Below are positions 14,600 through 59,452 of a DNA stretch of 64,000 nt, piece by piece. The position numbers were made by a program, and so were the translations under genes. Under the pieces are notes generated by a model. It made no database searches, was not told the origin of the DNA, and worked only from the letters and a program-made list of their open reading frames with translations. The stretch covers positions 744,001 to 808,000 of the forward strand of contig OZ218951.1 of assembly GCA_965112735.1 (NCBI GenBank), given 5' to 3'. This DNA comes from Phaeosaccion multiseriatum. Lineage: Eukaryota > Protista > Ochrophyta, other classes. How positions within the stretch are numbered: the stretch's first letter is position 1; every line of letters begins with the position of its first letter.

Positions 14600-14997
14600 C
14601 CCCAACTGAAGGTGATGATGGGTTCACAGCTTCAGACGGGGAGGCCCTAGCCTAGCCCGCACACCTCCGGCAGAGCGTCAGCGCCACAGGTTGGCTATCG
14701 CTGCTAGCAGAGCCTACAGCAAGGGAGAAGTGTGAGAGAACGGAAGGGGGTGGGCGGTTGGCGTGAGAGAGAAAGAATGAGAAGATAACAACGCAGAGCC
14801 TCGATGGGGATGCTGACACACAAGGCGAACACGAGAAGAGACTGAGGCACGTAGGGTCCCTGGGCATTCACCTGTGTGTGCCCGGCTTGCTTCTCTTTTT
14901 CCATTGGGCCAGGCCGTCGTCCTCACGGGGGAACGGACGCATGGCACTGGACGGCGAACAATCGCTGGCCCAATCCCCACAATTTTACCCAACAGTG

Positions 14998-16550
14998 ATG
15001 GGGCTGCGCCGCGCCCGCGCCTTGGGTGTGCTGTCCCTCATACTCGCAGCGGTGAGCCGGGTCACTTGCTTGTGTGGCAAGCGCACTCAAGGCAGCAGCA
15101 GCAATAGAGGGAGGGTACGGTGGGGCGCAGCTTCACAAAGGGGAGGAGAGGGGGGCGGTGTGGCTTTTGCTTCTCCCCCGAAGCTTTACTCCGGCTCTTC
15201 TCCTCCTCCAAGTCTGCATGGATCTAGAGGGGAAGCTCTACAAGGCTCAGCCACAGCAGCAGCGGAAGAGAGACGGGAAAAAAGGCAAGGAGCCCGCTCT
15301 TCCACAACCCTCTCCGTCACGAGATTGCCCCCGCCAATAGAGGTTCCACCACACCGCTCAGCTACCACCACTCCACCACCACCACCACCACCACAACCAT
15401 TATCATCATCGTCGTCATCATCATCATCAGCAGCAGCAGGAGCGGCAGCGCGGCTGAAGAACGGGCCGATGCCTGAGCACGTAGCCTTCGTGCTGGACGG
15501 CAATGGCCGGTGGGCCAGTCAGCGAGGGCTGCCTCGCACAGAGGGCCACAGAGAAGGAGCCAAGAGAGCGCTGGAGATGATCGAAGTGTGCAAGAAGCTC
15601 AGCATACGCCACGTGACGCTCTTTCTCTTCAGCACGGAGAATTGGAAGCGGCCGCCCACGGAAGTAGCGGCTCTGATGGGGTTGCTGGAAGAGTATCTGC
15701 GGAGAGAGTGGGACAGTCTACGAAGGAGGGAAATCCGCCTCGCGTGTATTGGGGACACGGATCGCCTTCCCATGGGTCTCCAGCAACTCCTTTCGGACAT
15801 CCAGGCGGACGCGCCCACCGCTGGTGATGCTGCCCCGGGTGAAAGTGAAAGAACTTCTCCTCAAGGCGGCGATGCTGCCCCACCCTCACCCCCACCCACG
15901 CCCATGACTCTCTGCCTCGCCATCAGCTACGGCGGCCGTCAGGAGGTTGTATCTGCGATGCAACAGCTGGCGACACGCGTTTCGAGCGGCGAGCTGTCGC
16001 CTGAGGACATCACCGAGGCCAGCGTGAGTCGTGCATTGAGTACAGGGTCACTGGGCATCCCAGACCCCGAGCTTATCATACGCACGTCCGGCGTGAGTAG
16101 GATGAGCAACTTCTTGCTGTGGCAGGCAGCGTACTCGGAGCTGTACATCTCGCCCAAGCTGTGGCCCGACTTTCGAGAAGACGACCTCATGGAGTCACTT
16201 CGAGATTTCAGCAAGAGGGAAAGGTCGGTGGTAGAGCATTATGAAGAATGGAAGGTCGTTTGTTCATTGTCGTTGAAGTTTGTAGATGTAGTGATTTTTG
16301 AGAATAAACTGAGCACAGGAGGAGGAGTGCCAACAAATTGAGAGTAGGACGGAGGTCTTGTTCGCCTGTTCTGAACGCCTCCTTCCCTCCCCCCCTCCCT
16401 CCTGTGCCCAACTTACGGACACAACAAACACACACGTACCCCCACTCATTTCCTCATCATCGCCAACCCTTCCCCCGCTGCAGGCGCTTCGGTAGGACTT
16501 CTCAGCAGATGGAGGCAGCGGCGGCGGCAGCGGCGTCTCACGGGGAGTGA
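14998..16550 (+). CDS. cis-prenyltransferase (UPPS/dehydrodolichyl-PP synthase family); exons 14998-16223 and 16484-16550 (alternative in-frame ATG at 14941)
   Basis: PEHVAFVLDGNGRWA, GHREG, FSTENWKRP, AISYGGRQE, DPELIIRTSG..RMSNFLLWQ.AYSE, LWPDF. The spliced C-terminus restores the RRFG motif. Hydrophobic N-terminal signal present. Confidence 0.92.
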
Positions 16551-20129: not shown

Positions 20130-22008
20130 GAGGGGGGGGGACGTGTGTGAGGAGAGGGAGAGGCAGAGACTCAAGAGAGAAAGGAGAGAAAGAGGGAGGA
20201 GAGGGAGAGACAGAGAAGGCACTGCGCTACAAATATCCCCTTTGGGACCCATCGTCTCGCTCTGTCTCACTCTCAGCCTAGCCATCGAGCAACCCTCCCC
20301 TTGCACTAACTCACTCACTAACTCACTCACTCACTCCCTCCCTCCCTCCCTCAATCCCACTCTCCTTCACCCACTCACTCTCACCCAAACGACCCCTCCA
20401 CCACGGCAGGCGAAGCGCATTGCAGAGAAGGGGCAAGTGGTGAGCGATCAGGTGTACTTCATGAAGCAGACCGTGGGGAACGCATGCGGTACAGTGGGAC
20501 TTCTGCACGCCATTGGCAACGCAGCCGTCTCCAAGGTAGGAGGTGTGGAGTAAGTCAGGGAGCGAGGCAGGGAGGGATGGAACGCGTATAAGCTGACTAG
20601 ACTCTCTCTGCTTGTGTGTCTGAATAGTATGTGGCAAAGAAGTGGTTACTGTATTGTCTTTGGAGGAGGGAGCATTTTGCCCCTGCTCCTGGAAGGGCTT
20701 GTGGGGATGGGCAGGGGACTCAGGCTTCCGTGGTGATCCTGACCCCTGTTGGGTCTGTCCTTCGATGGTTGGGTGCACGCTCCTCACCCCCCCCCCGCAA
20801 CTTACTTCACCGTGACGACCACCGTGACCGTCATTCAGGGGGTCATCTTGGAGGAGGGCAGCTTCATGCAAGGCTTCCTGAACAAGACAAAGGTGCGGGC
20901 ATATGGGCATGTGCCCGAGGGGGGAGGGAGGGAGGGGAAGGGCCTTTACCGCAGGAGAGGTAGTCAAGAGACACAGCAGGCAGAGCTTGTGCTCACTCTA
21001 AGTAACCCTCTCCTCCTCCGCCTCCTCCGCCTCCTCCTCCTCCTCCTCCTCCTCCTCCTCCTCCTCCTCCTCCTCCTCCTCCTCCTCCTCCTCCTCCTCC
21101 TCCTCCTCCTCCTCCTCCTCCTCCTCCTCCTCCTCCTCTTCTTCCTCCTCCTCCTCCTGCTCCACCCTTCCACTTCTCTCCTCCCTTTGTGCAATGGCGC
21201 CATCTTTTGTGTACCCCCCCTTCCTTTGCCCCGCCAACAAAAACAACACCAACAACAACATCAGGGCATGAGTCCAGCAGACATGGCGCAGGCCTTGGAG
21301 GATGACCAGGAGCTCGAGAAGACGCATACAGAGGCGGCGCACGAGGGGCAGAGCGAGCAGATCCCCATGGAGGAGCAGCTTAACTCGCACTTTGTGTGTC
21401 TGACTGAAGTGGATGGATGCATTTACGAGCTAGACGGGAGGAAGGTGAGAAGAGGGCAAGGGCGGGAAAAGAGGGACTCGTGGGGTGGGGCCCTCGTGGA
21501 GGGGGTTTGGGTTGGGCGGGGAAGGGGGGCTGCTGGACTGGGGGAGGAAGGAGAGCTGGGAAGGGCTTCCTCTGGCCATTTTCTGATTGCCGTATCACCA
21601 ACTGTTGCCGCCTCTGTCCGCCGCCTCCACCCCTCCCCCGCCCCGCAAAGGACACGCCCATCAACCACGGCCCAAGCAGCCCAGCGACGATGCTACAGGA
21701 CGGCTGTAGAGTCATCCAAGAGGTGCGTCTCCTCATACTCGTCATTGTTGATGACTCGAAACATGCCTAAGAATGTGTTGAGGTGGTGTGTATCTGTATT
21801 CCATCTCTCATGTCTCATCCCCGCACCGAAGCGCTCTGCTCTGCCAAAGTTGCGCATCGCGAGAGGGCCGAGAAGTGTCCCTTCAAAACCAAAACTGAAA
21901 CTCAAACTCCCCTCCCCCTCCCCCCTCCGCCCTCCGTAGTTCATGGCCCGCGACCCCGGAGAGATGCGCTTCACCATCGTGGCCCTCGTGCCCACCATCG
22001 ACGACTGA
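19592..22008 (+). CDS. UCHL3: Ubiquitin C-terminal hydrolase, peptidase C12 (UCH-L1/L3 type); exons 19592-19694, 19896-20077, 20410-20535, 20839-20892, 21265-21444, 21651-21722, 21940-22008
   Basis: [31 protein letters not shown] (catalytic Cys), HFVC (His), IYELDGRK (Asp), PINHG, RFTIVAL. Confidence 0.92.
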
Positions 22009-23690: not shown

Positions 23691-24292
23691 ACTCGTGCCT
23701 GCGAGGAGCGAGGAGGGCCACCGCAGCAGTACCTGCAGCAGTTGGTGATACAACAGCAGCAGCAGCAGCATCAGCAGGAAACAAACCGGGGACGGAGTAG
23801 AAGGAGGAGGCGCTTCATCGGGGAAGACGCGCAGGGGTGGGTCAGGGGAGATGGAAGCGAAGGACACAGTGTCGCCCTCGCTCGTATTCCGAAACAACAA
23901 ACGCAGAAAGGTCTGAGATTCTCAGACGTTTCATTTTGCTCCTCCTCGCTCAATATCTCTCCTCCGTGCTTTCTGAAACGATCTTGAAACGTCTGGCTCA
24001 AACTGACAGCCGAACAAGAACGGGAGCCAAAGCAAAAACAAAAAGCATTAATCAACAACAAGAGGGGGACTGAAGGAAAGGAGGAGAAGGCTCGCTTGCC
24101 AAGTGCTCAACGCAGCCGGGCTGGTGCTGCCGACAGGGCGGTACGGGGAGGTAGAAGCAACCAAGGCAAGGATGGGAGATAGAGGAGAGCTTCTTGCAGT
24201 ACGTAATTGAGCGAAGAAGGCGTATTTCCGCAAAGTTCCACCGAGCACACGACCAGCAGAGACCAGGCCAGGCCAGTCTTGCAGCGCTCACC

Positions 24293-27200
24293 ATGGAGGT
24301 TGGGGTCGTTGTGACGGTTGTGGTGAAGAGTATATCAGCAATCATTGACCATGCAGAGCAGGTCAAATGCTTCCCCAAGCAGTGTAAGCGCATCGCCAAC
24401 CGGCTCAAGATGCTGGAGGAGCCTCTGCAGGCTCTCACCAGGGAAGGGGCTCACGAGGAGAGGTGTGAAGCCCTGCGCTTCCTGCTTACGCTGGTCCGGG
24501 AGATTGAGGACAAGCTCAGCAAGTATTCCGCTCCTCAGTCTTGGTGGAAGATGCACATGCGTATCAAGGCGCATACAGCCGTCTTTGCGGATTTCCACAG
24601 CCGCCTTAATGAATGCCTTCTACATCTCCAGCTGAGCGACAGGGTGAGGGCCAGCCTTGCGGCAGAGCAGGAAGAGGCGCACACTCAGAGGGACGAAGAC
24701 GAGGACATGACCAGATTGCTCCAAGATCTGGAGGTCATGAAGGAGAAGACGAGCATGATGGACGAGCGATACACGCAAGTGGTGGAGGCATTGAGGGCGA
24801 GTCGACTGCAGGCGGGGGAGAGGGTCTTGGGCTTCAAGGAGATCGACCTTTCCGATCTCGACTTTGATGAGAGCGGGGCGGGGTGTCTGGTGGGCCAGGG
24901 CAGCTTCGGGACTGTGAAAGTTGCCAAGTGGAGGAAAACGACGCCAGTGGCAGTGAAGCTGCTCACCGGTAATGGCGCGGCTCTGAGCACCAAGGAGCTG
25001 AAGGAGTTTCGCAACGAAGTCAAGGTCCACAACAGCCTGCGCCACGACTTCATCGTGCCTCTGTACGGCGCGTGCACAGTGGAGCCCACGCTGTGCGTGG
25101 TGATGGAGCTCGCTCCGGAGGGGAACTTGTACGAGTATCTGCAGATGCACGCCGCGTCGTGCGGCAGTGGGGAGCAGCAAGGAGGCCCAGACGCCCCTCC
25201 GTCGACGTGGGATGAGCGTGTGGCGATGCTGTACGACGGTGTGCGAGGCCTGGCCCACCTCCATGCGGAGGGCGTGCTGCACCGAGACGTCAAGAGCTTG
25301 AACTTCCTCGTGTACCCCAGCAACAGGGTCAAGGTGTGCGACTTTGGCATGGCCAAGGTAAGGGTGGCGGAGAAGAGGCAGCAGCAGACAGATCGTACAG
25401 GTTGTGCTCTCGGGGGCTGCCCTCCTCCTGCCCTCTTCCTCGCCTGTCTTCCTCTGACGCAGCAGCCACGCCCCCCCCCCCCCCTCCCCGCTTCTTGCTC
25501 GCTTAGATGAAGACAGGCAGCAGCTCCATGAGCACAGCTGGAGCAAAGTCGGTGGGGTCTTATCTTTGGATGGCTCCTGAGATTTATGATGAGGAGAAGG
25601 GTACACCTGCCACGGATGTGTACAGGTGAGGCAGAGAGGGAGGCGGCGTGTGGGTGAATGGCTGTATCTCTTTGCTTGCAAGCTGCCTGCGTAAGGAAGC
25701 TGCGTCAAAACTTGCTTTTGGGGTGAGGTGTGCCTCTCACTCTCTGTCGTACACACCCCCACGCCTGGCATGCCGAAGCAGTCGTTAAGGAGCCACCTCT
25801 CTGCCTCGGCGGACTGCCCCCAACGCACTGTGTCACTTCGTGTGGTCCACTGGAGCTCACACTCTTCGCTGTTTCTTCTTCTCCTTGCTCACTACTGCAC
25901 GTGCCTTCCTGCACAGCTTTGGCATGGTGATGTACGAGGTGCTGTCCTTCCAGCTTCCCTTCCAAGGACAGAGTCAGGCTCATGTATGTATGAGGGTGGC
26001 CGTGAAGCAGGAAAGGCCCCTCGTCCCGGAGACATGCGTGGTAGAGGACAAGCGCGTCGATGACCTCATGCGGCGTGCTGGCAGCAAGCCCCAGGTCAGC
26101 GACCCTCCAGCAGCGACGTCTCGCAAGCTTTGGGCGCCATAGTGGAGGAGAGAGGCGACCCACGTGGAGGTGGTGGCCGCTGGAGCCGCCCATCATCGCC
26201 TCGTCACCAACAAAGGGAGGAAAAGGAGGCGGATGCCCGAGCTTTTGGTGAAGCGAGCAAGTGGCCGGAGGAGGAGAGGAAGGATACGATCGCCAACAGT
26301 AACGCACCACCCCAAGGGCAAGTGGACTCTCCCTCTTCAGCATACCCCCCAACCGCACCCCCATCACCCTCTGGTACGGTACCCTCGTCCCAAGAGCAAG
26401 CAGCAGCGGCGTTGCCACCACCGACTCCAGCGGCAACAAAGAAGAAGAAGAAAAAGAAGAACAAGAACAAGGAGGAGGAGAAGCAGCAGAGCCCAGAAGA
26501 AGCATCAACGGACGAGGCGAAGAGGAACATCTCAAGCCTCATTGCTGGGCGGAAGTACGACCTCCTGGTGATGCTCCTGCACGAGAGCTACGATTGCGAG
26601 GGAGTTGGCGAAGTGACGAAGCACGAAGTGATGCAGCACGCCCTCGAGGCCATCGCGACCCTTCCTGGTCCGAGCAGCAGCTCCTCCGGTAGTGAGGGTC
26701 GAGGTGAGGCCTTGCTCCTTGCGCAGGCCGGGATGGACAAGGAAGTGGTTCGAGCACTATCGAAGCTCGCTCGGTCCGTGAACGTAGCACAAGCAGGGCT
26801 TGACGTTGTGACATACCTGGCCCGCGATGATGACGTCAGGGTCAGGCTCGGCGCGGAGGGTGCGTGCGAGGCTGTAACTGTGGTGATGACGAACCTGCTT
26901 TGCAGAGGTGTTCAGGAGCGAGCATTCAGGGCTATTGTAACTCTGAGCGGTGGAAACGAGGCCAACACCTTGAGATTCGGACAATCGGGTGCGTGCGAGA
27001 AAGTGTTGGCATCCATGGTGAACAACGCAGGGGACAGAGGGGTCCAAGAGCTGGCATGCAGAGCCGTTACCAATCTGAGCTTTGGAAACTTGCCCAACAG
27101 AAAGAGACTGGTCGATGCGGGTGCGGTCGAGGCAGCATTAGCGGCAATGGTGAAGTGCGAAGGGGACACAATTACCCAAGGGAATGCATGCACGGTTGTT

Positions 27201-29891
27201 GTGAATCTGGGGCTGGTGGAAACGGCCACCACCAGGAAGAGAGTGTCCAAAGCACTGATAACGACCATGCGAACTCACCTAACGGACAACGGGGTCCAAC
27301 AGTACGCATGCGCCATTGTTCGGCGACTCATCTCGGAAGGCCGCAGCACATACTTGGAGGCTTTGGGCGAGGAGGGTGCGTGTGAAGCCGTGGTGAGGTC
27401 CATGAGGACCCATGCAGGGGACAGAAAAGTCCAAGAGCAGGCATGCGGGGCTGTTTGGAGTCTGAGCGGTGGAAACGAGGCCAACAGGAAGAGACTGGGC
27501 GAGGCGGGTGCGTGCGAGGCGGTGGTGACGGCCATGGTGAAGCACGCAGAGGACATAAACGTCCAAAAGCAGGCATGCGGGGCTGTTTGGAGTCTGAGCG
27601 GTGGAAACGAGGCCAACAGGAAGAGACTGGGCGAGGCGGGTGCGTGCGAGGCGGTGGTGACGGCCATGGTGAAGCACGCAGAGGACAGAGGCGTCCAAGA
27701 GCAGGCATGCGGGGCTGTTTGGAATCTCAGCGCTGGAAACGAGGCCAACAAGAAGAGACTGGGCGAGGCGGGTGCGTGCGAGGCGGTGGTGACGGCCATG
27801 GTGAAGCACGCAGAGGACAGAAACGTCCAAGAGCAGGCATGCGGGGCTGTTTGGAATCTCAGCGCTGGAAACGAGGCCAACAAGAAGAGACTGGGCGAGG
27901 CGGGTGCGTGCGAGGCGGTGGTGACGGCCATGGTGAAGCACGCAGAGGACAGAAACGTCCAAAAGCAGGCATGCGGGGCTGTTTGGAGTCTGAGCTTTGG
28001 AAACGAGGCCAACAAGAAGAGACTGGGCGAGGCGGGTGCGTGCGAGGCGGTGGTGACGGCCATGGTGAACCACGCAGAGGACAGAAACGTCCAAAAGCAG
28101 GCATGCGGGGCTGTTTGGAGTCTGAGCTTTGGAAACGAGGCCAACAAGAAGAGACTGGGCGAGGCGGGTGCGTACGAGGCGGTGGTGACGGCCATGGTGA
28201 AGCACGCAGAGGACAGAAACGTCCAATACCAGGCATGCAGGGCTGTTTGGAATGTGAGCCGTGGAAACGAGGCCAACAGGAAGAGACTGGGCGAGGCGGG
28301 TGCGTGCGAGGCGGTGGTGACGGCCATGGTGAAGCACGCAGAGGACAGAAACGTCCAAGAGCAGGCATGCGGGGCTGTTTGGAATGTGAGCCGTGGAAAC
28401 GAGGCCAACAGGAAGAGACTGGGCGAGGCGGGTGCGTGCGAGGCGGTGGGGACGGCCATGGTGAAGCACGCAGGGGACAGAAAAGTCCAAGAGCAGGCAT
28501 GCGGGGCTGTTTGGAGTCTGACCATTGTAAACGAGGCCAACGGGAATAGACTGCGCAAGGCGGGTGCGTGCGAGGCGGTGGTGACGGCCATGGTGAAGCA
28601 CGCAGGGGACAGAGGCGTCCAAGAGCAGGCGTGCGGGGCTGTAAAAGAGCAGGCGTGCGGGGCTGGTTGGAGTGTGAACCGTGGAAACGCGGCCAACAGG
28701 AAGAGACTGGGCGAGGCGGGTGCGTGCGAGGCGGTGGTGACGGCCATGGTGAAGCACGCAGAGGACATAAACGTCCAAAAGCAGGCATGCGGGGCTGTTT
28801 GGAGTCTGAGCTTTGGAAACGAGGCCAACAAGAAGAGACTGGGCGAGGCGGGTGCGTGCGAGGCGGTGGTGACGGCCATGGTGAAGCACGCAGGGGACAC
28901 AGGAGCCCAAGAGCAGGCATGCGGGGCTGTTGTGAATCTGAGCTTTAGATACGAGGCCAACAAGAAGAGACTGGGCCAGGCGGGTGCTTGCGAGGCGGTG
29001 GTGACGGCCATGGTGAAGCACGCAGAGGACAGAAAAGTCCAAGAGCAGGCATGCGAGGCTGTTGTGGATCTGAGCGATAGAAACGAGCACAACAAGAAGA
29101 GACTGGGCGAGGCGGGTGCGTGCGAGGCGGTGGTGACGGCCATGGTGAAGCACCCAGAGGACAGAAAAGTCCAAAAGCAGGCAGGCGAGGCTGTTGTGAA
29201 ACTGAACGATGGAAACGAGGCCAACCAGAAGAGACTGGCCGAGGCGGTGGTGACGGCCATGGTGAAGCACGCAGAGGACAGAAAAGTCCAAGAGCAGGCA
29301 TGCAGGGCTGTTGTGAATCTGAGCTCTGGAAACGAGGCCAACGAGAAGAGACTGGGCGAGGCGGGTGCGTGCGAGGCGGTGGTGACGGCCATGGTGAAGC
29401 ACGCAGAGGACAGAGGCGTCCAAGAGCAGGCATGCAGGGCTGTTTGGAGTCTGAGCTTTGGAAACGAGGCCAACAAGAAGAGACTGGGCGAGGCGGGTGC
29501 GTGCGAGGCGGTGGTGACGGCCATGGTGAAGCACGCAGAGGACAGAAACGTCCAAAAGCAGGCATGCGGGGCTGTTTGGAGTCTGAGCGGTGGAAACGAG
29601 GCCAACAACAAGAGACTGGGCGAGGCGGGTGCGTGCGAGGCGGTGGTGACGGCCATGGTGAAGCACGCAGGGGACACAGGAGTCCAAGGGCAGGTATGCC
29701 GGGCTGTTTGGAGTCTGAGCACTGGTAATGAGGCCAACAAGATGAGACTGGGCGAGGCGGGTGCGACGGAGGCAGCATCGGCGGCGATGAAGCGCTACAG
29801 GTGGAACGGAGCATTCGAAGAACAGGCGAAGAGAATTCTGGAATGCAAGAGAGGGAGGATGCAGGCACTGAAGAAGCGACTGTTCAAGTAA
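24293..29891 (+). CDS. MLKL-like four-helix bundle + TKL-type protein kinase + armadillo-repeat array; exons 24293-25357, 25507-25625, 25917-29891, with a 1-nt frameshift at ~26075
   Basis: N-terminus AEQVKCFPKQCKRIANRLKMLEEPL...IEDKLSKYS...FADFHSRLNECLLHLQL resembles the MLKL N-terminal domain. Kinase motifs: GQGSFG, VAVK, EF.NEV, HRDVKSLN, DFG, GSYLWMAPE, DVYSFG, and CWQQAPGQRP after the frameshift. About 23 ARM repeats follow. Confidence 0.85.
27363..29747 (+). repeat. Coding tandem array: 18 near-identical 132-bp (44-aa) armadillo repeats
   Basis: Unit LGEAGACEAVVTAMVKHAEDxxVQxQACxAVxxLSxxNEANxKR. 18x132 + 24 (duplication) - 15 (deletion) accounts exactly for the span. Confidence 0.97.
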
Positions 29892-30562: not shown

Positions 30563-32135
<1,573 letters not shown>

Positions 32136-32187
32136 TCACTCCCTCCCCCCCGCACTAACTCACTCACCTGGGACCGGTGTGCTCGCA

Positions 32188-33958
32188 TTACGCCCTCGCC
32201 CAGGGGCCTGCCGACTTTGGCCGCCTGCAATGTATGCCTCCATCTGCTCGGTCTCCTCTGTGCGGGCCCGTCCCTCCTCCCCCCCCGGGTCGACTCCCCC
32301 CTCCTGCTCCGTCCTCCGACTCCTGCCCTCCTCGCCATGGCCCCACGGCGCCGTCAAACTCAAACTCAAAGTGCTGCTGCTGCTGCTCCTCCTGCTGCCG
32401 AAGTGGACCAGGAGCAGAGGCGGCGGCGGCGGCAGCTGCTGCGGCGACTGCAGGGCTTGTACTGAGGGCCTTGGTGGGCATTTTGAAGCCCCCTCGGAGC
32501 ACCGCCTTCGCCCCCCCCCCTCCTCCTCCCGCCAAGTCGCTCTGATGGGTGGTGGGGCTGCTTGGGCCCCCGCCCCCCCAACCTCGCTCCACGGTGCCCC
32601 CCAGGGTCGGCGGCCCCGTTGCTGCGTCTCCATCATTCCTGTGAAGAGGTGAGTGTACGTAGTTTCAGTTTCGGGTTGGTTTATTTGTGTAGTAGGCTGG
32701 CTGCCTGACGAGTGATGAGTGTTCAAAGGAGTCATTCGATTTCCCCGCCCTACCGCCCGTCTCTGCCCGACGCTACTTGACACTAATTGAAACAAATTGA
32801 CAGTGCTTGACCATGATGCCAACTGCTTGACACTAATTGGCATTGCTGGACACTGCTTGACAATGCTTGACACCGGTTAACAATGCTTGACACTGCTTGA
32901 CACTGCCTGACACTGCCTGACACTGCTTGACAACGCTTGACAATACGTAACTTTGATGAGTAGCACTGACCCTGCTTGACACTGTCTGGCACTACTTGAC
33001 ACTACTCCTACTCATAGACACTGACTGCCGCTACTGATTGACACCACGCACCTGAAGGACGAAGCGGGTCTCTTCGACGCCGACTGCGGACGGCTAGACG
33101 AGGGCTGAGAGGAGGCCAGAGTCGACGCCCCCGACAGAGGCCTACTGGGCGTACGGGAAGTGTCCACCTCGGGCAGGAGAAGGGACGCCCCACCACCGAC
33201 ACCACCACCGCCTCCGCCCCCGCCCCCTCCTCCTGCTGTTCCTGCTGCTCTGCCGCTGCTGCTGGTGGTGTTGCGGCCCTTCTTGGCGAGGGGGCGATCA
33301 CAAGCGACGCAGGAGGGCACTAAGGACTTTCGACCGAAGCGGCTCTGGTCAGAGATTAAGACCTGTGTGGGGAGTGGGAGGGGAGAGGGTTTGAGAGGGA
33401 GAGAAGGGGGGGGGGGGGGATAGGGAGAGAGAGAGGCGGGAGTAGAGTGAGAGAGAGGGAAAGAGAGAAAGAGAGACAGAGAGAGTACGGGAGAGCAGAG
33501 TGAGCCTGACACGGACACCGAGACTGAGACTGATTGACTGACACCAGGTAGTACGAAACTGACACTTTCTGTAACTGCACCAGGCACTGACTGACGGACA
33601 CCGGGCAGTGACTGACCTGATCGTGCTTGGACAGAGCGGTATCGATGGCCTCGGCAACCTTCCTTCGGAGCTTCGTCTGCGCCTCTGCCCTGAGAGCCCC
33701 CGGGGGGCGGTGGTCGTGGAGAGCGGATATGGCCTCTTTAAGCTCCGCTCCGAAGCTCGTCTTTCCCAGGGGGGGAGGGAGGCAAGCAAAGGTGGAAAGC
33801 CAAGGGTGGGAGAGTAAGGGGGAGGAGGGGAGGGGGTGAGCTTGTACGGTCACGGACGCATCTCTCGTCCTCTGGTTCCTCTCTTTGTCTCAGTCTTGTT
33901 TGCTGTAACTTCTGACTGTCTCTCGCTCCCTCCCTCCCTCCCTCCCAACCTCTCTCTC

Positions 33959-41895: not shown

Positions 41896-44800
41896 GAGGT
41901 GTTCTGTCGAGGGGTGTGAGATGTATATTAGAGCTTATGGGCTCAGTATTGGAGCGCTCGAGGTAAGTTGTAACCATGTGTAGATGCGTGTATGTGTGGT
42001 ATTGATGGAGCGTGATGTGGAGGGGAAGAGGATGGTAAGGGTGGTAGAGTAGAGGATAATGGGGAATGAGAAGGGAGTGAAGGGGGGAGGGGGAGATGAA
42101 GGGGTGTGGGAAGGAGTGAGGTGGTGGAGGTGATATGTGAACTATCCTACTGTGGGTGGTGCGGGTGACAAGGCGTGACTAACTGTGGTTGCTATGCTGT
42201 GTGCTGATGGTCTCGCTGTCTGCTGGCTGGTGTACTCCTGCTCCTCAGGCGGCCGCTCCGTCGATGGCTCCCATGAGCCCCCAGTCGAGGGTTTCTGCTG
42301 CTTCGTGCTGCGTCATCGTGGCTCGAAGGAGGGTGCCATACCTGATCTCCCGCTGTGAGAGGGCGCGTTGAAGGGCGAGGGACAGTTGTTGGCGCAGGAG
42401 GCCCTTGATGGGGCCCGTGGCTGCCGCCGCTGCGGGGCCGAGCCCTCTTGATGCCTTGTGGATGGCCATCGCCTCGATGAGCTCGTCCGTTTGGTGGCCC
42501 AGTCTGCCGTACGTCTCGATTGCAATGCACTTCAGGGTTGAAGTCCCGGGCAGAAAACTGCCCAGATAGTGTGTGCGCTTGCGTTCTTCGGCGGCGGCTG
42601 CTGCGTGGCCTGGCGTGGTGGAGGCCCGTCCCACGTGGGTGGGGGCGGTGGGGTTGGTGACGGTGATGTCGCAGAGGAGGTTTCTCCGCAGGGGTGCGTC
42701 CGCTCCCGGGAAGCTACCTGCGGGATAGGTCAGGTCCATGCGTAGGTCTCGGCCTGCTCGGGTGCCCGTGGGGCCGTCGAAGCAGGTCTGGTCCTCTACT
42801 CGTGCTCCTCCAATGCCCACGCTGTGCATCATCCTCCCGAAGGCCTTGACGAGGAGGTGGTGTGTGTGGTTGTGGAGGCCGGTGCGGGGGCAGATGGTGG
42901 CGTGGGTAGTGCTTGCCGTGCGGGCGCAGCCTGTGCCGAGGCAGGGTGGGGGCGGGTCCGCGTATGGCGTGTTGACACCGAGGTTGCGACGAAGGGCCAT
43001 GGTCCATTCTGCGGGGGCCATGGTGTTGTGGCCGTGGGGGAGCGCTCCGAGGAAGGCCATGGCGCCCCTTCCTCGCTGTGAGTGGAGTCGGGCTGTTGCC
43101 ATTTCCTGTGTCTCCTCTCCCCTCTGTACCTCTGCCGGTGTGACGTCGATGGTGGCGATGCTCTGCGTCAGCTCCTCATGGCGGCGTTTGTGGATGAAGG
43201 TGGTGAGGGCCTTCTGGACGCCGTGGGTCGGTTGACGGCCTGCCTGATGGCTCCTGCGCACGTTGCGTCGCGCTGTGTCCTGGGCTTGGTGGTCAGGCGG
43301 CTCGAGTACGCGTGAGCGGGCCTCGTCGAACTGTGCCTGACCCACTGCTTGGATGAGGGGGGCCTCAGGGACCCCCTCCTCGTGCAGGAGGTTGACGCTG
43401 TCGGCGATGCTCTTGAGGGCTCCGTTGGTGAACAGCTGGTCCGGTAGGGCGCTCTCTTGGGAGCCTTCCCGGCGTGCGGTGCGGCTGAGCAGGGGGGGGA
43501 GGGTGAGCATCTTGTTGCCAAGGTATGCTGCTGGGGCGATGTCGTGGAGGCTGGTGAGGCCGAGGCCACCGAAGCGCCGTGCCGTATGCATTTGTAGGCG
43601 CTGTGTCTCCGTCCATGGCTCCTCGTGTGCATCTGCGGCCTGCTCCAGAGGGGGGGCATCGGGGAGTCGCATGATGTGGGCCATTGTCGCTCTGTTGGTG
43701 CGGTCTGCCCTGCTGCCGAGGGCGCGTCGGAAGATGGAGGGGTCAATGGCTCTCGCCAGGTGTGTGAGCCTGGCTGGGAGGCATTGGAGGAGGACGAGGG
43801 TGGCCGCCTGGGTGTTGTCCCACTCGCTGCAGTGTTTGGCGAGTTGGAGGTAGCCCCTGGGGTCTTCTTGGCCGAGGATGTTGCGGAGGTACTCTTCGAT
43901 GTACTCCTCCGTGCCGACGGGGATGCCGGCTACCACGGTACCCTCGGTGGCAAGTGTGGCGCCCTGCCGTTGGGCGTGGTCCCTGTCAGCCTGTGTTGGC
44001 TGCTTGCCTTTGCCCATGAGGTAAACCGTTTTCCTCTCGTTGAACTCGAGGCCCAAGCCTCGGAATTGGGCTTGGAGATGGGCATGGCGTGGGGCGTAGG
44101 TCTGTAGGGGTGCGTCGGGTTCCAGCTGGTCCATGAGGTCGTCTGCGTAGGCGGAGATGGTGGGGCGGTTCGCTGCGGTGTCGGCTGTGTTCTGAACTTT
44201 CAGCACTGGGTGGATGGCGGCTGCGAACATGAGAGGCCCTTCTGGTGCTCCTTGGTTGACTCCGGAGCTCTGGTGGATGGTCTGGGTGCCGTCTGGTGTG
44301 AGGGCGTTGTGGGCGGAGGCGTGGGAGAGGCTGGCGATGGCGTAGTTGATGCCTGCTGGGTCGATGGTAGGGAGTGCGCCTGAGGCTAGGACGCCTCTGG
44401 CACGCGACACGCGGGTGTAGGCCTTGGTGATGTCCTGCAGCACGACGGTTTTGCCGGCATCGTGCGCTAGCTGGGCTGCTGCGGCGTGTGTCTCCCCTCC
44501 GCCTCTGACCGCTACCGCTAGCTGTCCTGCGCTTCTGAGCTCTGGGCCCACCCTGTCCGCGATGAGCTTCATGTGACAGCTCTCCACGAGGCTGCGGTAG
44601 AGGTTGGGGGATGTCACAGGACGCGCTTTCTCGCCGAGGGCTGCGGCGCTGGTGCTGAACCAACGTTTGGCGAGCTGTGGAGGCAGTGGAGTGTCCCCCG
44701 TTCGGAGCAGCTCGTAGGTGTCAGTCAGAGCCTCCACGATTGCGTACTCCTGGGGGCTGTCCGGGGGGTACTTGACGTGGCTCGCCCTGCGCCCGTCTGC

Positions 44801-45415
44801 TCCTTGGCCCTTCCAGAAGTTGACCCTCCGGTAGGTCAGCAGCATGGCTGTGCTGATCTCCTCTCTGGTGACGTCGTTGCCATTCTCGGGGTGCTCCTGC
44901 AACTGGGTTCTGGCGTACTCCCTGGCTGCTGCTGCTGCTGTGCTAATCTCCTCGAGGCTCTCGTCTACGTGCGCTTGCTGGAGGCGTCTGAACGTCTCGT
45001 GTGAGGGGGGGAGGTGGCCGTCTCTGCTCTTTGTGCTGAGCCTCGCGGCGGCCTTGTGCAGGCCTCCGGGTTTGGTGAGCAGGTGGGCGCAGGTTTCTCT
45101 CCGTCGCTCCTCTGTCTGTGCCTGTGCTGGGGGTGGTGGGCGGCGTGCGTGTGCTGTGGCTATCGCTGCTTGTGCGAGTGGGGCGATGTCGAGGTCGAGG
45201 ACCATCTGTATCCGCTGCTGGCGGCTGTAGGCTCCGTCTTTAGAGAAGAGCATGGCAGGGAGGAGGTGGTGGAAGACATCCCATGCCAGAAGGGTGTGGA
45301 GGGTGGCGTCGGTGGGGCCGTTCTTGTGGGCCCTCAGCGCCCTGTTCCAGTTGTTGAGCGCTCTTTGCTGTAAGCTGATAAGGGGTGTGAGAAGCGGCAG
45401 CGGCAGGGAGGATTA
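41896..45415 (-). mobile_element. Non-LTR retrotransposon with restriction-like endonuclease (CRE-like clade), apparently 5'-truncated
   Basis: Intronless RT-ZnK-RLE ORF plus a ~350 bp 3' UTR. The ORF stays open upstream of the first ATG to a stop at ~45413. Confidence 0.88.
42245..45253 (-). CDS. Retrotransposon polyprotein: reverse transcriptase + CCHC knuckle + PD-(D/E)xK restriction-like endonuclease
   Basis: QLAVAVRGG, QDITKAYTRVSR, GVNQGAPEGPLMF, AYADDL, GGLGL, C..C..HATIC..HNHTH, RMDL..CDITV..EERKRTHY..AIETYGRLG. Confidence 0.92.
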   Translation of the reverse strand: MLFSKDGAYSRQQRIQMVLDLDIAPLAQAAIATAHARRPPPPAQAQTEERRRETCAHLLTKPGGLHKAAARLSTKSRDGHLPPSHETFRRLQQAHVDESLEEISTAAAAAREYARTQLQEHPENGNDVTREEISTAMLLTYRRVNFWKGQGADGRRASHVKYPPDSPQEYAIVEALTDTYELLRTGDTPLPPQLAKRWFSTSAAALGEKARPVTSPNLYRSLVESCHMKLIADRVGPELRSAGQLAVAVRGGGETHAAAAQLAHDAGKTVVLQDITKAYTRVSRARGVLASGALPTIDPAGINYAIASLSHASAHNALTPDGTQTIHQSSGVNQGAPEGPLMFAAAIHPVLKVQNTADTAANRPTISAYADDLMDQLEPDAPLQTYAPRHAHLQAQFRGLGLEFNERKTVYLMGKGKQPTQADRDHAQRQGATLATEGTVVAGIPVGTEEYIEEYLRNILGQEDPRGYLQLAKHCSEWDNTQAATLVLLQCLPARLTHLARAIDPSIFRRALGSRADRTNRATMAHIMRLPDAPPLEQAADAHEEPWTETQRLQMHTARRFGGLGLTSLHDIAPAAYLGNKMLTLPPLLSRTARREGSQESALPDQLFTNGALKSIADSVNLLHEEGVPEAPLIQAVGQAQFDEARSRVLEPPDHQAQDTARRNVRRSHQAGRQPTHGVQKALTTFIHKRRHEELTQSIATIDVTPAEVQRGEETQEMATARLHSQRGRGAMAFLGALPHGHNTMAPAEWTMALRRNLGVNTPYADPPPPCLGTGCARTASTTHATICPRTGLHNHTHHLLVKAFGRMMHSVGIGGARVEDQTCFDGPTGTRAGRDLRMDLTYPAGSFPGADAPLRRNLLCDITVTNPTAPTHVGRASTTPGHAAAAAEERKRTHYLGSFLPGTSTLKCIAIETYGRLGHQTDELIEAMAIHKASRGLGPAAAAATGPIKGLLRQQLSLALQRALSQREIRYGTLLRATMTQHEAAETLDWGLMGAIDGAAA

Positions 45416-57091: not shown

Positions 57092-57586
57092 GACGACACA
57101 AGCGGAGAAGGGCGGGAGAATAAGGAGCAGCTGGAGGAGGATACAGCTGGAGGAGACGATGTAGGCAGAGGGATATGTATGTAGGCACAAGAGGAGGATC
57201 GGAGAAGGAAGCGAAAGAGTTGGTGGGCCGAACTTACAGATGGCGTACGGGACATCGATCTCTCGCCCCTTCCCTCCCTCCATCCCCTCCACTCTTGGCA
57301 GGGTTTCTTGTTAGGTCATCGCAAGCAAACGCAGTATGAAGAAGGATTAAGGAAACTTACCCAAGAGAGAAGTGGGTTTTTTTCTGGCTTATAACGCTCT
57401 TTGTCTTCCTCCTTTCCTTTCTCTCTCTCCACCCTCCCATTTCGTTGAGAGCGCTTTGGCTCGGCCAGAGGACGAGGGCAGGGTCCACGAGGAGCAGGCG
57501 AGTCCTCGCTTTGGTGCAGAGGCCGAGAGAAGGGTCAGCGAGGAGGAAGCAATCCCATGGGGAGGGGGGCGAGGAGAAGAGTGGCC

Positions 57587-59452
57587 ATGGCCTGGTGCCC
57601 CTGCAGACCCCTTCTGCTTCTCCCCCTGGTGGTGGGCCTGGTGTCTGCCTTTGTGACATCGCCCCTTCATCCTCCTCATTCTTGCTCTTCTTCTCTTACG
57701 GCTCGTATCGCTGGGCTCAAGCGATCTCTCCCAAAAAGGGGGTTGGAAGGGACCTTTGGAGAGGCATCGGGGGGGCAAAGTGCTGCTCTTCGTGGCCACC
57801 AACGGCATCAAAATCAGCACCGTCTTTTCCACCACCAGTATCAGCAGCAGGAGCTGCAGGAGCAGCAGCAGCAGCAGCAGCAGCAGGGGCGGCGGCGGCG
57901 GCGTGATGGCTGCCACTTTACCTCTGGCCGATTCTCCCACGCGCTGGGGTCAGTGGCGTCGGCGTCGTCTGCAACGCGTACGGTAGTTGAGCCAGCTCAG
58001 CCGTCTTTTTCATCCTCTTTTCCGGCTTCTTCACGCCCCCCTTCCGTGAGTGCTGTCGCCGGAGCTCCTTCGAAGCTGGAGGCAAGATCCCTACTCTCTC
58101 TGAGTTTCGACGAGCTGTCAGAGGTGCTGGAAGGCAGTGGAAGGGCTGCCATGGTGTGGGCGGCCCTGGAGAAGGGCTTTGACCCCCTCTTGGGCGAGGG
58201 AGGGGTAGTAGGGACAGCCGAGGAGGGCACAGCAGGCGGCGGTGGAGAGCAGGGCAAAGGCAAAGGCAAAGGCAAGGGCAAGGGCATGGTCGTGAAGGGC
58301 GGCATCACCGACAGAACCATGGCCCAACTACATGACTCCTTCCACGGCTTGAGCCTACCGTGGTCGCTCGTCAAGGAGACAGTGAGCCCGTGCGGCACAC
58401 GCAAGCTCCTCATCAAGATGGAGGACGGGCTGGAGGTGGAGACGGTGCTCATCCCCTCTCTGACCGAGTCCAGGACCACCCTCTGCGTGTCGAGCCAGGT
58501 CGGGTGTGTGCAGGGCTGTCGGTTCTGCATGACAGGCACTATGGGGCTTCTGCGTGACCTCACGGCGGAGGAGATCCTTGCTCAGGTCTGGTACGCCAAG
58601 CGGGCCTGGCGTTTCGCAGCCCAAGAAGCAGCAGAAGCAGCAGCAGCAGTTGGTGATTCAGGGGGAGGAGGAGTTGGTGATATAGATACAGGACGAGGAG
58701 CGGCAGCCACACCAATGCCCATGCCAATGCCAGAGCTGAGGAACATTGTGTTTATGGGCATGGGTGAGCCGCTCAACAACGTCCACTCGGTCAAGCACGC
58801 ATTGCGGCAGCTTACCCACAACAAAATGTTTGGCTTTGCCCCTGCACACATTGCCGTGAGTACGGTGGGGCCCTCCCCGGAGGCCATCCTTGAAATGAGG
58901 GACATGCCCGCCCGGCTGGCGTGGTCGGTGCACGCTGGGACGGACGAGGTGCGCAAGGCGCTGGTGCCCACGACAAGGCACAGCATGGTCGAGCTGCGGG
59001 ACGCGTTTTCAGAGGTGCTGAAGAGAGGAGGAGGAGGTGGAGAGGGAGACGCAGGAGCGGGAGCAGGGGGGGGAGAGGAAGCAACAGGGCGAAGCGCCTC
59101 AGCGGGGAATCTCTTTGTGGAGGCGACCTTGATCGACGGGGTAAACGACACGCCCGAGCTTGCCCTGGCGATGGCAGAGCTGTTGGCCCCTCTGCCGGGC
59201 AAGACAAAGATCAACTTGCTGCCCTATAATGACATTGGGGTGGCGGGCTTCAAGCCTTCTCCGGCGGCGAATGTGGAGGCGTTTCAGAAAGTGTTGAGGG
59301 AGCAGGGGTTCACGGCAACGGTTCGGGTGGCGAGGGGGGACGAGGAGAGCTCAGCGTGTGGCATGTTGGCCACGGCGAGTAAGAAGGACAAGAAGAGAGA
59401 GAAGCAGCAGCAGCAGCAGCAGCAGCAGCAGTTGGTGATACAGCAGCAATAG
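57587..59452 (+). CDS. rlmN: Radical SAM dual-specificity RNA methyltransferase RlmN, plastid-targeted, intronless
   Basis: GTRKLL, VETVLIP, TLCVSSQVGCVQGCRFC (CxxxCxxC), NIVFMGMGEP, STVG, LAWSVHA, GVND, INLLPYN, SACGML. Signal peptide ends in VSA-F. Confidence 0.93.
   Translation: MAWCPCRPLLLLPLVVGLVSAFVTSPLHPPHSCSSSLTARIAGLKRSLPKRGLEGTFGEASGGQSAALRGHQRHQNQHRLFHHQYQQQELQEQQQQQQQQGRRRRRDGCHFTSGRFSHALGSVASASSATRTVVEPAQPSFSSSFPASSRPPSVSAVAGAPSKLEARSLLSLSFDELSEVLEGSGRAAMVWAALEKGFDPLLGEGGVVGTAEEGTAGGGGEQGKGKGKGKGKGMVVKGGITDRTMAQLHDSFHGLSLPWSLVKETVSPCGTRKLLIKMEDGLEVETVLIPSLTESRTTLCVSSQVGCVQGCRFCMTGTMGLLRDLTAEEILAQVWYAKRAWRFAAQEAAEAAAAVGDSGGGGVGDIDTGRGAAATPMPMPMPELRNIVFMGMGEPLNNVHSVKHALRQLTHNKMFGFAPAHIAVSTVGPSPEAILEMRDMPARLAWSVHAGTDEVRKALVPTTRHSMVELRDAFSEVLKRGGGGGEGDAGAGAGGGEEATGRSASAGNLFVEATLIDGVNDTPELALAMAELLAPLPGKTKINLLPYNDIGVAGFKPSPAANVEAFQKVLREQGFTATVRVARGDEESSACGMLATASKKDKKREKQQQQQQQQQLVIQQQ

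Follow-up and report, generated by a model that had tools for sequence, protein, structure and literature searches.

Vertebrate MLKL, the executioner of necroptosis, is a pseudokinase that lacks catalytic motifs and has no repeats at its C terminus; its activation depends on a separate kinase, RIPK3. To our knowledge, almost nothing is known about the recognition of viruses and parasites in algae outside the green lineage, and we know of no ochrophyte receptor candidates proposed to date other than the NB-ARC-TPR and LRR-ROCO genes of brown algae. Here we describe a gene of the ochrophyte alga Phaeosaccion multiseriatum that joins a predicted MLKL-type four-helix bundle, a kinase and a long array of armadillo (ARM) repeats, and whose intact relatives we consider candidate intracellular receptors. 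The gene lies in a window of 64,000 nucleotides (assembly GCA_965112735.1, contig OZ218951.1, positions 744,001-808,000, forward strand), and all coordinates below are those of the window.

Parts of this layout have been described in other eukaryotes. Pm13, a wheat powdery mildew resistance gene from a wheat relative, encodes an MLKL_NTD domain, a brace and a kinase complete in its catalytic residues, which has been contrasted with the pseudokinases of mammalian MLKL and the AtMLKLs; its role in immunity, with cell death, is proven (PMC10951266). The algal protein likewise has an MLKL_NTD bundle and a brace before a kinase that retains every catalytic residue. Pm13 has no repeat array, however, and its kinase is of the plant receptor-like LRR_8B/DLSV type, whereas the CTR1/Raf type is the closest to the algal kinase. 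The proteins belong to separate eukaryotic supergroups, and their likeness does not show that the fusion descends from a common ancestor. Glomeromycotina have MLKL homologs that carry Sel1 repeats (PMC8778642). These homologs, together with the MLKL_N-kinase-Sel1/TPR proteins P0121-P0125 and P0130, have the same order of bundle, active-type kinase and C-terminal solenoid; unlike the algal ARM gene, the Sel1/TPR versions contain few repeats and no long array of near-identical DNA. The general statement of the original prediction for this locus that plant MLKLs are pseudokinases is outdated given the Pm13 kinase, and the Glomeromycotina homologs are an earlier instance of MLKL combined with repeats.

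The second group of comparable systems are receptors. Fungal NLRs are enriched for highly conserved repeats under positive selection, the criterion for repeats with high internal conservation (HiC) being at least 85% identity over at least 100 residues (PMC4986451). Like the algal gene, fungal NLRs with WD40, ANK or TPR repeats and HeLo or HeLo-like heads have a helical death-type N terminus and C-terminal repeats at least 85% identical, as well as positive selection at ligand-facing positions and multicopy, lineage-specific expansion (PMC4986451, PMC9815663). They differ in having a central NACHT or NB-ARC NTPase, and ARM is not among their repeats. The NB-ARC-TPR and LRR-ROCO genes of Ectocarpus, candidate immune receptors of an ochrophyte, resemble the algal array in the quick diversification of their repeat domains (PMC3341825, PMC11378527), but they shuffle cassettes of one repeat per exon and carry NTPase or GTPase switches, whereas our gene has an intron-free array, a kinase in the middle and an MLKL-like head. 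A search of the literature for a bundle-kinase-ARM architecture in stramenopiles or protists returned no description. MLKL_N-kinase proteins are thus already known, and the armadillo-array version is a new form with an evolutionarily active, sensor-like array.

Gene Structure and Domain Order

The locus is a three-exon nuclear gene of the alga, on the + strand at 24293-29891, with the ATG at 24293 and the stop codon at 29889-29891 as determined from open reading frames (ORFs), splice signals and translation. Both predicted introns end in AG acceptors and leave the frame intact, the spliced reading running from DFG through APE to DVYSFG without interruption. Read through a one-base frame break, the chain comprises about 1,720 residues: a four-helix bundle, a brace helix, a tyrosine kinase-like (TKL) kinase, a disordered linker and about 24 armadillo repeats. 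The features of the gene are as follows.

24293-25357, + strand: exon 1, from the ATG through the MLKL_N bundle, brace and kinase N-lobe to DFG (ORF and GT donor at 25358)
24329-24706, + strand: MLKL_N four-helix bundle, residues 13-138 (PF22215, phmmer match to 4btf, Foldseek)
24635-24826, + strand: long acidic brace-like helix, residues 115-178 (AlphaFold2 helix, alignment to the mouse MLKL brace)
24890-25357, + strand: kinase N-lobe and catalytic loop, with the G-loop at 24893-24910, VAVK at 24947-24958, HRDVKSLN at 25280-25303 and DFG at 25340-25348
25358-25506, + strand: predicted intron 1, GT..AG, frame preserved over the joint
25507-25625, + strand: exon 2, Ser/Thr-rich activation loop and APE at 25573-25581 (translation; weak Pfam kinase match, profile positions 155-188)
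25626-25916, + strand: predicted intron 2, GT..AG, the joined frame yielding the DVYSFG motif
25917-29891, + strand: exon 3, kinase C-lobe, linker, all armadillo repeats and stop (ORFs of two frames, adjoining at the break)
about 26069-26076, + strand: frame break of one base in the kinase C-lobe (three-frame translation; the upstream frame stops at 26140-26142)
26150-26858, + strand: low-complexity Pro/Ser/Lys linker, then diverged helical repeats, with a poly-Lys run at 26438-26482 (translation, Tandem Repeats Finder)
26859-27374, + strand: degenerate armadillo units, 3-5 (about 4), 20-59% identical to the array consensus (Pfam Arm and ARM_LRRK2)
27375-29759, + strand: conserved array of 18 units of 132 bp, or 44 residues (Tandem Repeats Finder, alignment, AlphaFold2)
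29760-29891, + strand: diverged C-terminal capping unit and stop codon (translation)

All searches were made with separate pieces of the gene and not with one joined or frame-corrected protein, and the domain matches obtained in this way lie far beyond chance. The original prediction of three parts, a bundle, a kinase and an ARM array, was borne out together with its coordinates by Pfam, translation and Tandem Repeats Finder. No piece of the gene matched a NACHT or NB-ARC P-loop NTPase in Pfam at E values up to 1. The gene has C-terminal solenoid repeats of the NLR/STAND layout (Pfam Arm), a putative sensor, and its kinase stands in the place of the NACHT/NB-ARC module, as had been proposed; in this reading the kinase would serve as the switch.

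The N-Terminal Bundle

Sequence and structure comparisons both identify the first ~150 residues as a predicted MLKL-type four-helix bundle. Residues 13-138 matched the Pfam family MLKL_N (PF22215) with 49.4 bits, the curated cut-off being 27 bits, and an E value of 4.5e-13 over profile positions 7-136 of 142. The subthreshold Pfam matches of the head were SesA, Rx_N and DUF7032, presumably related helical death or N-terminal domains. In a phmmer search with the 186-residue head alone, the best sequence match in the PDB was mouse MLKL (4btf; E value 7e-5), and the alignment spans the bundle into the brace, covering the motif on which the initial suggestion of an MLKL-like N terminus was based. 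In the ESM Atlas, the nearest cluster to exon 1 was chordate MLKL (score 0.97).

The AlphaFold2 model of the head, built from a 17-sequence family alignment, reached a predicted local distance difference test (pLDDT) value of 88.6 and shows a compact bundle of helices together with one long helix that spans residues 115-178. The ten best Foldseek matches of this model in the PDB were all structures of the MLKL executioner domain, with probability 1.00, and the template modeling (TM) scores by target were 0.55-0.69 for entries containing that domain only. Vertebrate MLKL (4btf, 6zvo, 2msv) was thus the top match of this part of the protein in sequence and in structure, in agreement with the earlier claim. 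Among the Swiss-Prot proteins of AFDB, mouse and human MLKL ranked first, followed by the N termini of plant PUB12/13, MCA1/2, the coiled-coil (CC) domains of plant NLRs and RPW8.

The long helix, the acidic brace-like helix of the original prediction, aligns with the brace of mouse MLKL, and its residues D127 and D134 are almost invariant in the family alignment. It is the predicted link between bundle and kinase, as the brace is in MLKL. Unlike vertebrate MLKL, the algal protein continues with a kinase that has VAVK, HRD and DFG and then with an ARM array of ~1,000 residues.

Two further observations concern the bundle. Its first helix (24293-24346) is strikingly hydrophobic, with a run of Val, Gly and Thr, and presumably resembles the membrane-inserting first helix of the HET-S HeLo domain and of plant CC-NLR resistosomes. 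Plant PUB12/13/15 have N-terminal domains that can be superposed on the algal bundle, with TM scores by query of 0.53-0.58 (AFDB); in these proteins, a helical N-terminal domain is followed by a U-box and ARM repeats, parallel to the bundle-kinase-ARM layout.

The Kinase and the Frame Break

The kinase matched Pfam PK_Tyr_Ser-Thr with an E value of 7e-30 and, judged by its sequence, is an active-type TKL kinase. Its closest solved kinases are the TKL kinases CTR1 and B-Raf. The set of motifs is complete, GQGSFG, VAVK, the alpha-C glutamate, HRDVKSLN and DFG lying in exon 1 and APE in exon 2, so that the TKL kinase with VAVK, HRD and DFG that had been read from the letters is confirmed and the pseudokinase trait of canonical MLKL (animal MLKL and AtMLKL) is not found here. 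Its activation loop is a long, Ser/Thr-rich segment.

Within the C-lobe the reading frame is broken by one base. The second frame, which carries the kinase subdomain-XI motif and all repeats, opens right at the break, and no plausible intron fits a splice that would skip it. We compared the contigs of four sequencing runs with positions 24100-27370; the runs derive from one sample and are possibly the assembly's own data, and hence are not independent proof. A short contig that covers the break and differs from the window by one additional base and four substitutions was found in all four runs, its depth being 1.4-2.3 times that of the flanks; run X2 also contained the frame-broken version of the window, at flanking depth. 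We considered the in-frame variant as an allele and rejected this, as the window version has the full flanking depth and the variant about twice that depth. We take the frame break to be real in the raw data of this copy and assign the in-frame version to about two paralogs at other sites of the genome. Parts of the head and kinase also show raised depth, which points to words shared with paralogs.

The window copy may accordingly be a young pseudogene that yields at most a truncated bundle-kinase product of ~450 residues, without the last kinase helix and the repeats, and we judge the chances of this to be even. The break at ~26069-26076, after which the upstream frame stops at 26140, is what such a reading expects, as is the single-copy depth of the broken version beside an in-frame version that has four other differences, ~2x depth and therefore other loci of origin. 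Any inactivation would have to be very recent, though, since the downstream frame of 3.8 kb is fully open and the array highly regular, and with runs from a single sample the break could also be a systematic read error or a strain-specific allele.

The contigs showed two more differences from the window. In three runs, contigs match only a 37-base stretch of the bundle (24399-24435) and then continue into unlike, G-rich sequence; they possibly represent a paralog that diverges there or has an intron inside the MLKL_N domain. A contig found in two runs omits 75 bases within intron 2 (25689-25765, with ends CG..GC), an intron deletion variant of a paralog or an allele.

The Armadillo Array

The linker of ~240 residues, which matched no Pfam family, leads to repeats that form a regular array. 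Tandem Repeats Finder reported a period of 132 and 18.1 copies at 27364-29765, and Pfam Arm matched 14 stretches (E value 3.6e-72). The array is made up of 15 clean units of 44 residues, one unit with an internal duplication of 8 residues (unit 28563) and a span of 83 residues (29115-29363) that equals two units minus 5 residues over their junction. Among the 15 clean units, the mean pairwise DNA identity was 91% and the maximum 99%; the 18 near-identical repeats noticed at the outset are therefore confirmed, within a total of about 24. The nearest partner of many units is the adjacent one, while for some it is distant. Blocks of three units (132 residues) were mutually 83-92% identical and count as HiC repeats by identity. 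The array is young.

An AlphaFold2 model of six units had a pLDDT of 97.4 and three helices per 44-residue unit, at 2-12, 17-31 and 35-43, corresponding to H2, H3 and H1 of the next unit. In Foldseek comparisons, the model superposed on designed peptide-binding armadillo proteins with TM scores of 0.83-0.90. The array thus resembles designed and natural peptide-binding armadillo proteins (dArmRP 5mfk and 5aei; importin-alpha type), with a unit of 44 rather than 42 residues.

With units up to 99% identical, collapse or expansion during assembly could have made the copy number and order of the 132-bp units an artifact and the count of 18 and its variation unreliable, all the more as Logan contigs fragment around words shared with paralogs and the contig comparison, covering 24100-27370, did not reach the array itself. 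Several observations make such an artifact improbable: the frame is open through all 18 units and both irregular stretches are in frame, each unit has its own combination of substitutions, and related arrays are present in independently assembled genomes.

Diversification of the Array

Differences between the units are concentrated in columns 17, 18, 21, 25, 28/29, 32, 33 and 38. Entropy along helix 3 is helically periodic (permutation P value 0.002), that is, restricted to one face. The same columns vary among the five 43/44-residue units of Phaeothamnion P0070 (Spearman correlation 0.48, P value 0.006) and, shifted by one residue, in the 41-residue units of three Chrysophaeum paralogs. We take this helix-3 stripe to be the face of the peptide groove, mapping it after importin-alpha and designed armadillo proteins.

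We counted nonsynonymous (N) and synonymous (S) substitutions by parsimony on a tree of the 15 units built with the unweighted pair group method with arithmetic mean (UPGMA). The stripe columns (21, 25, 28, 29 and 32) were set a priori from the Chrysophaeum arrays; this stripe from another species replaced pairwise dN/dS ratios for columns chosen by their own entropy, a test that is circular. Over the whole array we counted 71 N and 8 S, giving an omega of about 2.6 (P value 0.004). The stripe alone had 27 N and no S, its N density being 4.4 times that of the other columns (P value 5e-7 against an even spread). The count leaves recombination and mutation bias out of account; both inflate S and N alike. 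The differences between units are thus mostly nonsynonymous and lie on the helix-3 stripe, which presumably lines the groove, and the conserved repeats with focused hypervariability of the original prediction are recovered in these counts.

Relatives of the Gene

The gene belongs to a multicopy, lineage-expanded family that combines MLKL_N and kinase with solenoid repeats of the ARM, TPR or Sel1 type. The same bundle-kinase-ARM layout is present in Phaeothamnion confervicola P0070, the JGI protein P0009, P0129 and Chrysophaeum taylorii. In Chrysophaeum there are five or more paralogs, of which one has a 123-bp tandem array of its own, in 10 copies. Aureoumbra has a bundle-kinase-TPR protein, and other proteins have the order bundle-kinase-Sel1. 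Within the P. multiseriatum genome, paralogs are indicated by the read-depth excess and the variant contig; a single-copy gene invariant across strains, which had been named as an outcome that would speak against the proposal, does not agree with this excess and the Chrysophaeum paralogs. No second copy was found within the 64-kb window. The head domain is divergent, and phmmer with the 186-residue head found only 14 matches in the whole library at E values up to 1e-3. A search for exon 1 homologs among candidates of 195-621 residues gave no match at an E value of 1e-15, full-length relatives lying outside that range of lengths.

The ARM subtype is also fused to U-box, ADP-ribosyltransferase, HECT, MYND and Roc-LRR heads in many protists. 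As a side observation, this "GACE..VV..AM" subtype is present in P0006, P0027 and P0103, with a U-box in P0006 and an ADP-ribosyltransferase head in P0103, and its units there are diverged and not near-identical; it looks like a widely reused binding module.

The range of these fusions bears on whether the protein could be an ordinary signaling kinase, in which MLKL_N is an autoinhibitory, oligomerizing or membrane-targeting module and the ARM repeats are a scaffold for endogenous partners, with a housekeeping role in the cytoskeleton, in trafficking or in a MAPK-like cascade rather than in immunity or death. A kinase closest to signaling kinases of the CTR1/Raf type, an ARM subtype that serves as a general-purpose module under so many heads, housekeeping genes as neighbors, and the pairing of a similar N-terminal helical bundle with ARM repeats in plant PUB12/13 are all in keeping with this explanation. 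A scaffold for conserved partners is expected to be under purifying selection, yet nonsynonymous changes far outnumber synonymous ones on the stripe; copy number and repeat type differ among lineages, and the bundle match is specific to MLKL_N and not one that any coiled coil would give. Weighing the two sides, we consider an ordinary signaling kinase unlikely, if still to be reckoned with.

Genomic Context

The window has a G+C content of ~59% throughout, and the gene is therefore not compositionally foreign. Three neighboring ORFs, identified by domain matches, form an ordinary housekeeping context.

14878-16341, + strand: cis-prenyltransferase
20749-21939, + strand: UCH (C12) peptidase
57557-59452, + strand: radical-SAM domain protein

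About 12 kb downstream of the gene, an ORF of 1,002 residues on the - strand (42245-45253) has a weak RVT_1 match (E value 3.6e-7) and is probably a retroelement. Directly downstream of the gene, a long, low-complexity GGREG/EGGR ORF (30952-32652, + strand) extends over a simple repeat of GGGA type (31082-31147) and is probably noncoding.

Discussion

We propose that the intact members of this family are intracellular receptors in which the ARM array is the sensor, the kinase the switch and the MLKL-type bundle the effector, and we give this reading, which draws on sequence, models and analogy, a probability of roughly 0.55. An immune role of the intact members is suggested by the precedent of Pm13, where MLKL_NTD is combined with an active-type kinase, and by the positive selection on the repeats of fungal NLRs. 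In such a receptor, the ARM groove would bind a variable, probably peptide-like ligand, and binding or clustering would trigger phosphorylation, in cis or trans, of the Ser/Thr-rich activation loop by the kinase itself. Phosphorylation may then detach the bundle from kinase and brace, and the freed bundle would oligomerize on membranes and bring about cell death or signaling. The protein would in effect unite RIPK3, MLKL and a sensor within one chain, the window copy being a recently inactivated member or a strain-specific null.

Several points weigh against the receptor proposal. For the ARM-type members, the ligand, the kinase activity, the membrane activity and any infection phenotype are hypothetical. 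The alignment behind the bundle model contains vertebrate-like MLKL rows that could bias the model toward MLKL, and neither the profile E value of 4e-31 nor the head model is fully independent of these rows, the single-sequence results being unaffected. The selection statistics are approximate, as they take no account of transition bias or of recombination inside the array. The sequencing runs found are all DNA from one sample, as is evident from contigs that contain introns and carry intron 2 unspliced, and splicing and expression are predictions. A defense-island context was considered and rejected, the neighbors being the cis-prenyltransferase, the UCH peptidase, the reverse transcriptase and the radical-SAM protein. 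Finally, with the frameshift in the window copy, the full chain cannot be made from this locus as written.

More broadly, the family may represent an ochrophyte class of receptors without an NTPase switch, in which an ARM sensor, an active kinase and an MLKL-type executioner are combined and the array is renewed by unequal recombination and positive selection, an NLR-independent design for innate immunity. We offer this wider claim tentatively and think it more apt to fail than to hold. If it were true, it would provide concrete, testable receptor candidates across several algal classes, a four-helix-bundle executioner wired to sensors without a NOD module, and a natural model, in a single chain, of the release of an MLKL-type bundle by phosphorylation. 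With ARM, TPR and Sel1 repeats swapped on one bundle-kinase chassis, the family would also be useful for studying the exchange of receptor modules.

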